From Eutreptiella sp. 'Long Island Sound 2002' (taxonomy: Eukaryota > Protista > Euglenida), in assembly GCA_964036045.1 (NCBI GenBank), contig OZ038378.1:155248001-155312000 (forward strand): a DNA stretch of 64,000 bases, in the 5' to 3' direction. Shown one piece after another: positions 53,301-60,221 of this stretch. How positions within the stretch are numbered: position 1 is the first letter of the stretch; the number at the start of each line of letters is the position of its first letter. The translations under genes and the position numbers were made by a program. Below the pieces are notes generated by a model. That model had not been told where the DNA came from, did not search any database, and saw only the letters and a program-made list of their open reading frames with translations.

Positions 53301-56300
53301 TTCCAATATTATGGCACGTCTCGGGCCGGCTGGTTTCCTGACATAAAGCCTGACACAACCTCCCATCCCAATGCCCTAGGCTGTGAATGCCTTGTACCCA
53401 TTGGTCCCTGATTTATCAAAAAAAAATAAAGCAGAATTGTCTGAAAAACACCCGCCGAATGCACTGGGGCAAGAGCCGGATGCAGACAAAATTTGAGGCA
53501 AATTTCCTCGACCAGTTTCGGAAAATCTCATCATCAGTTCCTGACATCAAGCCTGACACAACACAGAACACCAGAACACCCACGGTACGCGTCTGAGACA
53601 ACCATGCATCGCCCAAAATCCAGGATGCCGATCATGACAGCCCCGGCCTGTGGTGGCAGAAAGCAACTCATCTGCTGATTATGTGGGGCCCGGAACGGGG
53701 ATACGCCCAACACACACCTGTGCCCTCGTACCCGCTGACGGTACTGGCCATGAAGATCAGGTACGGACCGAACATCTTTTCGACAAGAGGAAGGGGGATG
53801 GCGGCGGCTTCATCCACCACCAACATCTCCGCTTGGGCGAAGAACGAAGAGTCCTGACAAGAGCAGGGGAGAATGCAGGGCGCGTTTCATGGGGAGGGCG
53901 TGTGGCAGATTTGATCACCGTTTCAAAAAGTGGGGTGGTGGGGAGCATGTGGAGGTGGGGGCATGGAGTGAGTGCTGGGGAGGGGGCTTGGGCTATGGAA
54001 CGGGGAGAGGACGAGGCGCCCATCGGAGGAATGGACGTTTAGCCCTCGCTGTTCCCGATCACTCGTGCTGTCCTGATCTTGGGAGAAGAATATTTGGCAC
54101 CGGCCGCATCGCAGTAATGGCCGATGTCGTCACAAAGGCTAAAAATAGGGTGTGACGTCTTTGCTACCAGCATCCCAAGAAGACACAAAAAAATGCCCCT
54201 GTTTGTCAAAAAGAGCCATTCCAACCGCTGTAGACACCCCAAACAATTAAAATGCGAATCTTTTCCATGCATTTCCCTCCACTATTACGGTGAAGAATGC
54301 AGTATTACAGATGCAATGACCTCTGTTGGTCGTATTTGGCCCTGTTGTTGGTCATTTTTGGTGGTTATGTTAGGATCCTGGCAGCAGTGAGGTCATACCT
54401 GATTGTTAGCCCTTGTGACCCCTTGATGGGGACTGATACTCAATCAAAACTGTGCAATTCCTTTCTACACATGTTTCTTTTTAGTCTCTTACCCTCAAAA
54501 TAAGGGAGGTGTCCTTAGTTGCCTGCCAAACCCCGCCTGGTAACCATGACCCAATAATAATGATAATTAAAGTTCTCCTAACAGGAATAAGAATGATAAG
54601 AATACGAATAATAATCATAAGAACAATAATCATAAGAATAACAATAATAATAATAATAATAATAATAACGAGGTGGGCATATGCTTAGTTATATAAATAG
54701 ATGAATGTGTAAATAGATAAATTGATGGGTGCACAAGATGGATTGATAGGTGCATGACAATCATGGGGTCTACCTGAGGGCTAGGGAAGGGCTGATGGTA
54801 GGTGGACCTGAACAAACGGCTTACCGTGCTCTGCTTCCACAGGCTAGATCTAATGGGGCTGTGCCTTCTATCGAGATACGAGGGATATAGGTTGTTCCAG
54901 TGTGGTGGTATGGCATAGATGAGATTGGAGATGGATCCGATCCGGAGGTCAGGTCTAATGGTGCTGTGCCTTCTATCGAGATACGAGGGATATAGGTTGT
55001 TCCAGTGTGGTGGTATGGCCAGGGGGGGGGGGCGTTTCTGCGAAATGTGAAGTCATGCCGTTTTGCCTAAAATTGGCCACTTCGAAAAAAGGGGGGGGTT
55101 TTACCCCTTTTGCGCGCAACTGAAATTTTCCAAAACGCGCCGCGGGGGGTTACCTTGGATGTGCACAAGTGCGTATTTGCCCATTTTTTGGGCATGCAGA
55201 AGGAAATTTGGGGGTGTCTTGCTTCAAAAGTGACGGATCTTTGCACGCTTACTTGATGCTACTGTTGCACATATCAGGTGTGGCAGAGACGCGGTGGCCT
55301 AAGGGGTTAGCATACAACAACGGAGGCCTCCACTCTACCTTCTCACCAATGCAATGGTGGTTGTAGCCGCCCACACCCCCTGCCGGGGGGGGGGGGCATG
55401 GACGATTTCTCTTGGGCGCGGCCCAACACCGAAGAGGGTGCCTCATAGGGTGCCCAATCCTGCCAGACGTACGTTTCGTCACGTTTCGCGTTTCGCGTCA
55501 CCGCTTCATGGGGTGCCCAGTCCCACAATACGGTCGTTTCGAATTGTTTCGCGTTTCGGATCACCGCTTCATGGGGTGCCCAATCCCACAATGCGGTCGT
55601 TTCGAGTCGTTTCGTGTTTCACGGGGTGCCCAATCCCGGAACTTCGGTTGTGCCAACAACAAGTACATTGTCTGTTACGCTATGGTTGTGTGTTGTTGTG
55701 TGTCTCGCGGCAATGCGCGGAACCGCATGCACTTCGCACCCCCCCCAAAACAAAAACTCCCTAGCGGTAACACCCATCTACCACTTTCACTTCAATCTCT
55801 ATTTCCTCAATGCACCGCTTGCACTGCGTTGGTCCCAAGCCCCGCGCCATAGCGTAACGTCTCATGCACCTGCTTGTGCACCTCACGTCATCTTCTACTT
55901 CCGCTGCCTTTTGGAGTCCCTACTCGACTTCCGTTCTGGTGCTTATCGCTTCTGTGCCACTGAAGCTGCCACGGGTGCCTTCCCACTTTTCACTTGCTTG
56001 CCTTGCCCGCGGGGTTGCTTGGTGGTCTTCTTGTACACTTTCTTGTGTCCTGTCGCAACGACCACTTTGGCACTGCTGTCCGAACTGCTGCTGTCGGAAC
56101 TAGACTCCGACGATGTAGAGGACGTCCCACCACTACTAGAATTGGTCGTTGACGAAATATCCGTGTCGGAGCCGTCTGACTCATCGGACGCGCGACGCTT
56201 TGGACACCAATCTTCATCGGCCTCACTTGTAGGTCGTTGTGTGCCATATTTGTCCCCTCCTTCATCACCCGTGGTTGTGGCTTGTCCCATGCCTTCCCTT

Positions 56301-59300
56301 GCTTCCTTGTTCACATGAATGGTAATCCGCCGAACCTTTTCTGCTTTCTCCGCCTTTGTCTTCCGAGCACGCCGGGCAATCTGCTTCTCCACAACCCAAT
56401 CACTTACTTCAATTGTTTCGGGGTCCAAGCCGGGATGCACGAGCCGCAGGTGGTACTTGATATTCAATGTGAATGGGGATGTGGTGCACATCGGAACCGG
56501 ACACTTCCTTGGGACATTGCCCTTCTTTTCCAATGCCTTCTTGTACTTGAAGCTATACCGGTAAGGGCAGTTGGTGGACACCTTCGTCCCATTCAACGTG
56601 GTTTCGCAAGTCCCGGTGGAACGACCGCAAAAGCCACATGGCTCCGCTTTTCCACGGTGGCGTGCATCCGCCACGGCGTCACCTTTAGCAATGTGCTCTG
56701 CCACGTGGTCCGACATTATGCGCAAGGGCACCGCCGCATCACAAAAGAGGCAACATTGTACATCATCTGCAAGCCGCAAGTCGCAAGCCTTCACTCCATC
56801 GTATGGCTCTGCTACGATCACGGGGCAGTACTTGATGTCTTGGGCCGCGGCATCGATGAACGTATTCAAAATGTTCGGGTCTACTTCCCATCTTCCCTCA
56901 TCGGTGATGTCCAAGTCCACAAAGGTGGTGCTCGCTGCGTCCACGTCGATGGTGGGACCAAACCTACCACTCCATTGCAGTGCCACTTCCGCGTTTGGCT
57001 GGGAAAACGACAAGAATTCTCCACTAAGCTTCGCACCTTGGGTGTGCTTCAAGCCCATGGCCGACGGATGTGCAATCGTTGTGCCTTCCAAAGTACACTG
57101 CAAGCTGAAGACCCCTGCTGATGTGCACTTACCCCTTGATGGCAAATTGTACGTTACCAACGTCGCAAACGGCGTTCCGGGCGCAACCGCATCTGCGGGC
57201 GGGGGTGCAACACGTGGTCCTGGACACCGTCCTTCACCTCTCACCCTTCGCAACCGCTCCGTAGAATCATGCTCCAAATTGCTGTTGAAAACCTTGTTGA
57301 TGTACGGGGCCATGTGGACGGTGGACCCCTCATTTAGTTTGACATATGCCGCCGACCGGTCCGGCCCATCTGCAATTTGCAAGAATGACTCCCAAACATG
57401 ACCTTCGGGGACTTCAGAGCTTGAGTTGCCTCGCACTGCTGTTTCCGGTACTTCTTCCACCACCAAAGAGACATCTCTCTCCTCGTCAACTTCCTTTTGT
57501 AGAGACCGGCCTTTTGGCTTCAAGAGGGTTGCTCCTTCCGAAAATAACTGATTGAATATACCAATGCTACCTTGTGTTCCAATGTTGGGGTGTTTAGCCA
57601 GAATCTTTTCCGCTTCATTGATACATTGCCGCCACACGGCACCCAACTTGATGTTTTTCACTTTGCAATCGCCCTTGTATCCAGGTGGTTTTAGACGAGC
57701 CACTAGGTAGCGAGTACGAGTCTGCTTCCATTCCGGATTATCCTCGAACACTTTCATCACACTCATAATGGTCCTGAGGCGAGTCATCAACTGTGCCATG
57801 TCAAAATTACGATTGTGCTCCATGCACCGCAATAAAGAATAAAGGTCCTCATTGGGCTGCGACCCTAGCAACGTGACTGGCCTCGGGTGTGTTCATTTGC
57901 ATCCACCATATCACGTACAGGACGCCTTGAAAACTGTATTGCAAATGTACGTACAAGGCAGTGGTGATGAACTTGGTCCCAAACTTGTTGTAGTTGAACA
58001 TGAGCAAGAGTGCCGACGTCCCCAGGAATAGTAATGTGGTCGTAAGAGAATTCTCCGCTCCAAAGTAGCCATGGCATAGACAATCAAAAATGCAGCTAAG
58101 GAGAATCAAGTCAGGCTGGACGCGCGCCAAGACATTTGCAACATCTTCAGTGGATTGGAGGGCAACACCGACACGTGTGATGCATCGCAAAAGTTGCAAT
58201 CCATACTCAACATGCTGCTTATCCTTTGGATTGAACATGGACTGATTCGGAAATTGTACCCCAGCGGCATCCCCACCGCTTCAGAGCGGGGGGGCAAAAT
58301 CGGAAGTGGCCCACTTGTGGGCAAGGTGGCTACGTAACCCCTGCCGTCTCGGGGATCCCCACCGCTTCACAGCGGGGGGGCAAAATCAGAAGTGGCCCAC
58401 AAGTGGTCAAAAATGCTATATAGTGGTAGTGTGAGGTGCGCTAAGCAAACCCTTCCCCCCAAAAAAGGGGGGGGTTTCGGTTATGTGAAAACCCTACTTT
58501 TGCCTAAAAATTTGGCCAACGAAAAAAGGGGGGGGTTATGTAAAACCCCCCATGCTGTCGTTCTCCGCAGAAACGCCCCCCCCCCCCCTGAGTATGGCAT
58601 GGATGAGATTGGAGATGGATCCGACCCATAGGTCAGGTCAGGCGTCAAAAGTTTCTTGTGTTTTTCATCCATTTTTGAATTTTCCACAAATTCTGAGTAT
58701 TTTGAGTATAGACACATAGGGGGAAAAAATTACCCACTCAGGAGGCCAAAAAATTTTTTTGGCGCCTTTGGCGCCAGCACTTTCCCCCAAAATCTCATAT
58801 TGGAGAAAGACAAGTTTGAAAACTTTGGGGGATCTGGGGGGGGAGGGGGGGGGTTTGGCACAAGGCCTTGGCGTTGGTTTGTTGGCGGCGCCTACTGGCC
58901 TCTCGCCACTGTGTCCGGGTCTTGAGTCCTGAAGATCCACCAAAGCCGCTGTGTTGGCCCACCGTTTCTGTTTCTCCATCGGTGGCGGGTTGTGGCACCA
59001 ACACATTTTGAAGGATCCAAACGGCATTAATCTTCAACTTTGCGCTTCAACTTTGGGGGAGGTGGGGGGGGTGTTTGGCACAAGGCCTCGGTATCTGATT
59101 GTTTGCCTTTGGCGGCGCCTATTGGCCTCTCGCCACCGCTCATTCTGACCCTCTGTGGGCCCGAACGTGTTTTGGTTGTGTCAACGGAGCCCCCGGATGA
59201 CTTGTCCTGTTTGACTACTCCGGGGGTCGGCTGTCCCGGAGACGGGGCTGTTGCCCTGTGCCATTGACCAGGGGCATCCAGATGCTGGGCCTCAGGGAAA

Positions 59301-60221
59301 GGAGAGCGAGGGGGTGGAGTTCAGGGAAGGCCCGCAGGAAACGGATTGGGGAGGGGGGGTGTACCTGAGGCGAAATGTATTGGATTGTCTGGCGGTGCTC
59401 TTTGAAGATGTTGATGCGCACCACCGCTTTGTTGAACTCTTTGTTGGTCGACTGGTGGATCTCGAAGTCCTCTTTGTCAGCGTACCCCATCTCCTCCAGC
59501 CCCTTGACCACGAAGAAGAAGAAGGCCGTCAGGTTCTCAGGGGCGGGGGAGGTCACAAAGATGTTGGCAAAGCCCTGCTGCACGGCCCCGGCCACGGCCA
59601 TTCCTTTGAAACGAAGAAGCACAAGGCAGAGCGGGGGCCACGGGGGGGGGGGACTACAACCGGTCCTGATGCGACCCACCCCCCAAACTATCTTTCAAAA
59701 CTTCGGGGGGGGGGGGCTGGCGCCGGACAGTTTTCTCTAGAGACACTTGTTGGGGGCCGACCCGGCACCGCTATCTTTCAAAACCCGGGGGGGGGGGGGG
59801 GGGGGCTGGGGGGGGGGTCGCATACAAGGACCCGGCCCGGCCGCCCCCCCGTCGCGGGGGCTGCCGCCGGATTTGCTTTGTTCCGCCAGCGCGTCCCTTG
59901 TCTGTTGTCGTTGACCAATTCGAAAGCGGCAGATGGGGGCCAGATCGCCGTAAAGGCAGCCGACCGGCACCCCCCCCCCCCCCCCACACAAACGCCTCAT
60001 CTCAAACAACTCCCGACGTCAGCACACATTCAGCCACCTCCCGCACTCAGCACAACACGTCCCAAGACAGGTCGGGCACTCACCAAAACACTCATCAGCA
60101 CAGGAAACCAGCAAGACAGGTCAGGTAACAGGTCGGTAGGTACATTTGTATGTTAGTGGTACCCATGCAGCCTCAGGGCGGGGCGGTACCCAGGCCCAGT
60201 CACGAACTGAACGGTTACGAA

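Follow-up and report, generated by a model that had tools for sequence, protein, structure and literature searches.

The 64,000-nucleotide stretch of DNA analysed here (hereafter, the window) comes from the euglenid Eutreptiella sp. 'Long Island Sound 2002' (assembly GCA_964036045.1, contig OZ038378.1, positions 155,248,001 to 155,312,000) and holds, at 55020-58590, a transposable element of 3,571 bp. This element is a genuine, recently inserted and crippled copy of a cut-and-paste transposon present in many copies; with a probability that we put at about 0.88, it stems from a young, high-copy DNA transposon whose transposase has a P-type core, and is itself an internally deleted, non-autonomous member. 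A sequence-only reading of the window had proposed a divergent element of the P/THAP9 type, and the P element transposase is indeed the top match of the family in structural as well as in profile comparisons.

The ends of the element were settled before turning to its protein, and both can be given to the base. The sequence-only reading had run from 55012 to 58598, start and end positions that take in the target-site duplications (TSDs). The G/C-run terminal inverted repeats (TIRs) that it described are present at both ends: the repeat finder returned a perfect 21-nt inverted repeat (55022-55042 and 58566-58586), and past about 25 bp inward the inverted correspondence between the left and right ends is lost. 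The TSDs it described are also there as stated, identical at seven of their eight bases. The insertion point falls within the second unit of a 105-bp tandem repeat, whose first unit reads uninterrupted across the corresponding site (ggtatggc-atagatgag). Excising the element together with one copy of the TSD rebuilds unit 2, so that unit 1 shows the empty site within the window itself and thereby defines the two boundaries. This restoration of the tandem unit, which had been claimed from the letters, is borne out by 92% matches from the repeat finder on either side of the element (54836-54914 against 54941-55019, at a spacing of 105 bp, and 54908-54955, the continuation of unit 1, against 58592-58639). 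Since unit 1 has g where the right TSD has a, the G-to-A change postdates the insertion.

Copies of the element were searched for in the window's own 2.28-Gb assembly. Its left 301 bp gave 1,082 first-look candidates; 40 of these were scored, with identities of 96-100% to the left end in the window, a result that places the element far beyond chance. The mean pairwise identity among 30 of these 40 left ends is 97.3%. For the 642-amino-acid (aa) open reading frame (ORF) of the element, there were 5,900 first-look candidates, and 75 of them yielded scored matches. The family is young and high-copy, with TIRs of 23-25 bp that contain a run of G11-G17, some copies having CAAG.../...CTTG ends. Five other copies have both ends in the fetched locus (L002, L011, L012, L034 and L060), and all five are bordered by 8-bp TSDs (gtaccaac, gtgtcgta, gccccgac/gccacgac, ccttcaac and actggagc); with the window copy, the TSD is 8 bp in all six insertions examined, as the sequence-only reading would have it. 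Over 34 end flanks, of which those paired at a single insertion are non-independent, C stands next to the terminus in 62% and G at the eighth position out in 50%, a weak target preference of the form G......C. Other copies keep the ends and carry different internal deletions, some of them being only about 1.5 kb long, and internally deleted, non-autonomous copies outnumber the long ones.

It is the fold of the catalytic core that ties this family to the P element. Because the window copy is without this core, the model was taken from L029 (L029:3430-5184), an open stretch of the window's family with 90-91% protein identity to the remnants in the window; the AlphaFold 2 model has a pLDDT of 92.1 and a pTM of 0.86. 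Searched against the PDB with Foldseek, it retrieved the Drosophila P transposase first, in its strand-transfer complex (6pe2/6p5a, E 2e-11), followed by RAG1 (2.9e-4), Transib (7.7e-4) and Hermes (4.5e-3). The structural match on which the sequence-only reading had made its assignment depend was also obtained with VIA-align, which gave Z 24.0 against 6p5a_A (root-mean-square deviation, rmsd, of 4.7; 396 of 442 residues; model 69-529 onto chain 128-565), versus about 11 at most for the other transposases (Transib 11.2, RAG1 9.8, and Hermes 8.0 with an rmsd of 7.6). The alignment to P spans the helix-turn-helix (HTH), the two halves of the RNase H domain and, between them, the insertion domain, whose helices (model 319-479) all lie within it, at a sequence identity of only 10-12%. 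The order of a long helix, an HTH and a split RNase H with an all-helical insertion domain is that of P, and the 8-bp TSD and the CA...TG ends of the TIRs are those of Drosophila P, THAP9 and Pdre.

Single sequences and small profiles were not informative: Pfam scans of the window ORFs and of the longer paralogues matched no family, phmmer with the window ORF found no match among PDB sequences, and a 12-sequence profile built from own-genome paralogues returned low-complexity PDB matches only. A profile of 91 sequences searched against 177,635 PDB sequences placed the P transposase 6p5a first (E 0.0022). In the corresponding HMMER alignment, the family DE falls on P D230, D..H..K..R on P 339-348, and KQxV.LA on P 398-404; the DKQxV motif of the family aligns with P K398-Q399-K400-V401. 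Nearly invariant columns among the 91 sequences are D, D-G, D..H..K, D.Q.V and G.D..E..F...R. The catalytic triad of P consists of D230, D303 and E531 (PMC7776569); the family residues D279 and E496 are nearly invariant and lie inside the region superposed on 6p5a 128-565, with offsets at the alignment ends that are consistent with D303 and E531. The nearest ESM Atlas clusters carry PF21787/21788/21789 (score 0.97), and sub-threshold matches to PF21787 were found in 4 of 48 public relatives (best E 8.5e-4), no other family being recurrent.

One has to keep in mind several points that weigh against this assignment. The model comes from the paralogous locus L029 and not from the window copy, and the equivalences of the second Asp and of the Glu would follow from structural alignment ranges rather than from a residue-by-residue superposition. 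No family member reaches the Pfam gathering score for the P-type models (PF21787, PF21788, PF21789 and PF12017); a scan of the genome with PF21787 gave no match either, which carries little weight as the controls gave none. The residues that contact GTP in P are K385, K400, V401, S409, F443, D444, N447 and D528 (PMC7776569). In the family profile, the equivalent of V401 is nearly invariant and that of K400 is N or H, and at the position of D528 (placed by spacing, three residues ahead of the catalytic Glu) the fungal relatives have Asp, the euglenid copies Q or R. The genome-wide search with the termini, which was expected to lead to complete copies, yielded many copies and, among those scored in a non-exhaustive hunt, no fully intact one of the window's own subfamily; the longer copies are the probable source of transposase for this subfamily. 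The last of these points is the THAP domain. The sequence-only reading had held that the N-terminal part was deleted together with such a domain; the deletion, including the loss of catalytic Asp, is confirmed by the longer copies, and the THAP part of the claim is not supported, Pfam detecting no THAP domain in the full-length L028 ORF (E<=1), in the N-terminal pieces of the paralogues or in the 48 public relatives.

According to a review of P elements, THAP domains are restricted to animals and THAP is treated as part of the P architecture. Instead, the N-terminus of the family carries C-x-C...H...H as well as a conserved module in which YPF..H....W and C...C..C occur; after the N-terminal Cys/His module comes a 47-residue helix, located where P has its leucine zipper. 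A model of the first 501 aa of L028 (pLDDT 76.5, with a disordered linker at 79-174) gave weak or coiled-coil matches only with Foldseek and VIA-wide, which are uninformative on a THAP fold. The family thus agrees with the P superfamily in fold, triad, TSD and termini, and departs from it in THAP and Pfam thresholds. It also differs from P in its protein length (1.2-1.6 thousand aa versus 751 aa) and its TIRs (23-25 bp versus 31 bp), and it alone has a long C-terminal extension with three Cys/His clusters and a 10-mer in direct orientation in 85-bp and 63-bp arrays. P is a four-exon gene, whereas the L028 ORF shows no sign of four exons.

These departures could also mean that the family is a separate, unnamed lineage of superfamily rank, having in common with P only the ancestral plan of an RNase H with a helical insertion, as is the case for Kolobok and hAT; in that case, the 8-bp TSD and the CA...TG ends would have arisen in parallel, and the enzyme would not have to depend on GTP. 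Such a separation would fit the sub-threshold scores of all Pfam P-type models, the missing THAP domain, the non-Asp D528 equivalent of the euglenid copies, the 10-12% identity to P and the large modules added at both protein ends, with their Cys/His clusters. We nevertheless consider it improbable, as the match to P spans nearly the whole resolved chain, HTH and insertion domains included, and stands 13 Z units above the next transposase, and as the motifs are collinear, P-specific ones among them. The choice between a separate lineage and P membership is, moreover, largely a matter of where the superfamily line falls. Kolobok itself was rejected: its TSD is TTAA, and none of the six TSDs, all of 8 bp, has this sequence.

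Two other superfamilies share some of these traits, and Hermes (hAT) and Zisupton likewise are DDE cut-and-paste elements with 8-bp TSDs. hAT elements often have CAG...CTG ends in addition, the termini here start with CAG, and Hermes is among the structural matches; its scores are nonetheless far below those of P (Z 8.0 against 24.0, Foldseek E 4.5e-3 against 2e-11), no hAT dimerisation domain or BED finger appeared in any Pfam scan, and the motif after the second Asp is D..H and not the C..H reportedly assigned to hAT among the motif types of Yuan and Wessler in 2011, all of which makes a hAT element very improbable. We give the same very low credit to a member of the Kyakuja-Dileera-Zisupton (KDZ) group. 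Mushrooms are rich in such elements, and the closest named relatives of the family are hypothetical proteins of Agaricomycetes; however, PF18758, the Pfam model of the KDZ transposase, is absent from the own-genome proteins at E up to 0.1-1 and from the 48 relatives at E up to 0.01, and PF21787, which stands for the RNase H domain of P type, is the sole Pfam model to recur. For KDZ, there is no structure with which the fold could be compared directly. The 8-bp TSD of Zisupton (PMC12730594) is a trait that KDZ would share with the element in the window.

With the P-type core retained as the best account of the family, the state of the window copy can be described from its alignment to the longer copies L029 and L015, on which its defects were mapped. 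The two minus-strand frames that had been reported are real, the 642-aa ORF being preceded by an upstream ORF of 129 aa (57849-58238), and the frameshift placed near 57870 is an 8-bp deletion that splits one from the other. The remnant of the insertion domain corresponds to core residues 351-487 of L029. Compared with L029, an internal deletion of about 1.9 kb runs from inside the 85-bp array to the codons before NPKDKQHV; it removed the promoter region and about 450 N-terminal codons, including both catalytic Asp, and the window copy retains only the Glu motif of the catalytic triad. Because of the N-terminal deletion and the frameshift, it cannot make transposase or move by itself. The 8-bp-deleted form is found in the window, at L007 and at L011, and not at L015, L010 or L029; L011 also aligns unbroken over the 5' deletion junction of the window copy, and the flanking DNA is distinct at each locus. 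From the frameshift common to these three copies, the junction shared with L011 and their separate flanks, we infer that a defective derivative was transposed in trans after the damage. Internally deleted P elements are likewise moved in trans. The C-terminal extension takes up the greater part of the 642-aa ORF; its last Cys/His cluster has a weak profile match to the ZNF64 C2H2 finger (E 0.062), and the tail of the ORF is rich in Ser and Lys.

The layout along the transposase gene, derived from the window copy and the longer copies, is a TIR, about 200 bp, an 85-bp tandem array, the ORF, two to three 63-bp units and a TIR. Four occurrences of the 10-mer CACCGCTTCA were counted in the 64-kb window, versus 0.15 expected; all of them lie within the element, two in each repeat type, and all on one strand, so placed that CACCGCTTCA is a candidate transposase-binding site. 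The size of the 85-bp array varies between copies, from 2 units in the window to 25 in L029 (402-2557) and about 5.7 kb of units in L016 (L016:1-5770, genome C2:141886000-141891770), and the 85-bp unit holds a short palindrome around CTGAAGCGG. The coordinates of all the features of the element are listed in the table below.

Features of the element and of its insertion site, in window positions (strand as +, − or unstranded,.)
Feature	Positions	Strand	Basis
Tandem repeat (105 bp) unit 1, intact reference for the empty target site; ggtatggc at 54907-54914	54836-54940	.	repeat finder
Tandem repeat unit 2, first 79 bp as far as the insertion point	54941-55019	.	92% identity to unit 1
Left TSD, ggtatggc	55012-55019	.	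read in sequence; 8-bp TSDs in five more copies
TIR on the 3' side of the transposase gene (CA, G11, CGTTTCTGCG)	55020-55042	+	repeat finder and end comparison
40-nt subterminal repeat, first copy	55061-55100	+	repeat finder, 80% identity
63-bp subterminal tandem repeat, 2.8 copies, two of them with CACCGCTTCA	55443-55620	+	repeat finder
642-aa ORF, beginning at the third-catalytic-residue motif LLGSQPNE (57827-57871)	55943-57871	−	ORF list, alignments
Third Cys/His cluster, C2H2-like finger with C-x4-C-x12-H-x4-H spacing	56432-56518	−	motif reading
Cys/His clusters of the C-terminal domain, within the 642-aa ORF	56681-56755; 56597-56638	−	motif reading
Remnant of the insertion (GBD-like) domain, frame AAGVQFPNQSMFNPKDKQHV..., stop after the frameshift	57849-58270	−	copy alignment
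Frameshift, 8-bp deletion just upstream of the Glu motif	57877/57878	−	comparison with two longer copies
Internal deletion junction, short microhomology between the 85-bp repeat unit and the gene	58266-58270	−	comparison with longer copies
Subterminal array of 85/86-bp units, of which two are left, each with CACCGCTTCA	58266-58410	+	repeat finder, copy comparison
40-nt subterminal repeat, second copy, in direct and not inverted orientation	58498-58537	+	repeat finder
TIR on the 5' side of the transposase gene (CGCAGAAACG, C13, TG)	58566-58590	+	repeat finder and end comparison
Right TSD, agtatggc, one substitution	58591-58598	.	read in sequence
Tandem repeat unit 2, final 26 bp after the element	58599-58624	.	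repeat finder

Transposition in the P superfamily is GTP-dependent and involves a 17-nt staggered cleavage of the donor. By kinship with P, the transposase of the family would bind the 23-25-bp G-run TIRs, and probably also the subterminal repeats bearing CACCGCTTCA, pair the ends and excise the element; the CA...TG ends would be joined to the target with an 8-bp stagger, and repair would leave the 8-bp TSD. In the history that we propose for the window copy, a deletion reaching from the subterminal 85-bp array on the 5' side to within the gene would have taken the DNA-binding part and both catalytic Asp, an 8-bp deletion would then have shifted the frame just before the catalytic Glu motif, and the defective derivative would have been mobilised in trans by transposase from longer copies, the copy described here having landed in unit 2 of the 105-bp tandem repeat.

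A few sequences around the element deserve mention. Immediately beyond the right end of the insertion, a G-run followed by TTTGGCACAAGGCC is present twice (58826-58870 and 59056-59100), with a spacing of about 230 bp; this pair looks like a different short repeat family, and G- and C-runs of 10-20 nt are common in the neighbouring stretch (59640-59990). An Rfam scan of the window gave no match.

Full-length relatives of the window protein are DDE transposases of about 1,200-1,570 aa. L028, which belongs to a paralogous family 35% identical, is a single long ORF, an uninterrupted frame of 1,573 codons. The motifs seen in the alignment of paralogues are DE(V), GTDGDxRR, DPxHLxK..R, DKQxV and LLGSQPxE..F/Y...R. 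A related family lies in the same genome at C1:158939564, 3.6 Mb downstream; its protein is 37% identical to residues 17-620 of the window ORF, and it is distinct from the window family, without close DNA identity. The full-length paralogues also have an extra N-terminal domain of about 250 aa (L028:2744-3640 on the + strand, L014:7686-8600 on the − strand, and the N-terminus of L030:3814-6915 on the − strand), which is about 25% identical between families and has a W-Y/F-x-D motif after an aromatic-rich stretch; no Pfam match was found for this domain, which could be a captured protease-like or other accessory domain.

Outside this genome, the L028 core matched nothing when 5.8 billion proteins were searched by word index, and the profile of the paralogues, searched against 1.84 billion representatives, retrieved 2,067 proteins at E<=1e-3, 340 of them at E<=1e-30. 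The named relatives are hypothetical proteins of Agaricomycetes (for example, TFK58748.1 of Pluteus cervinus, XP_007771747.1 of Coniophora puteana and KAG6836745.1 of Arthromyces matolae) and one protist transcriptome. The Agaricomycete proteins share the catalytic core at 20-25% identity, with the same invariant columns, and differ at the Glu motif, where they have GTDRLE instead of the GSQPxE of the euglenid copies. The closest public protein, P0001 (796 aa, 34-35% identity; ENA ERZ25074135; L062, contig ctg9326, 336256-354646), has the C-terminal architecture of the euglenid transposases and a DRMNV variant of the DKQxV motif, and it probably comes from another euglenid-like organism; the 18 kb of its locus show no DNA similarity and no G-run TIRs.

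The protist host that had been supposed from the sequence is the right one: the 24-nt sequence of the Euglena spliced leader occurs 3,309 times in the genome, and its reversed control not once. These occurrences are scattered and on both strands, not only in tandem clusters (for instance, C1:29492-29515 and C1:113346-113369), and the scattered copies may be dispersed genes for spliced-leader RNA or retroposed copies.

In the literature consulted, neither P-like elements of euglenids nor the Agaricomycete family turned out to be described, Repbase entries not being part of the comparison. A Pfam-based census counted only 11 P copies in fungi (PMC5751038), from which it follows that the family seems to escape Pfam-based surveys. 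It is possible, although we hold it for a tentative idea and rather doubt it, that the euglenid families and the more than 2,000 cluster representatives, mostly from Agaricomycetes, form a deep lineage of the P fold that has so far gone unrecognised, in which THAP was replaced by other zinc modules and the GTP-contact Asp was lost in the euglenid branch, so that this branch may work without GTP or with another cofactor. Such a lineage would extend the P superfamily to Euglenozoa, and Pfam-based surveys would then greatly undercount this superfamily in fungi.

The window copy is, in itself, an ordinary dead derivative, whose value is that of a cleanly delimited example with an internal empty-site control. 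What it represents is a mechanistically P-type cut-and-paste element and a large protein family without a name in the standard domain catalogues. P-type transposases are known mainly from animals, and a P-like core is found here in a euglenid with no THAP domain detected; counts of P-like elements in fungi and protists that rely on domain models are likely to fall seriously short. The family provides an annotation handle for a large share of the unclassified repeats in this genome of about 2.3 Gb, and it is a natural variant on which the universality of GTP dependence in the P fold can be tested.

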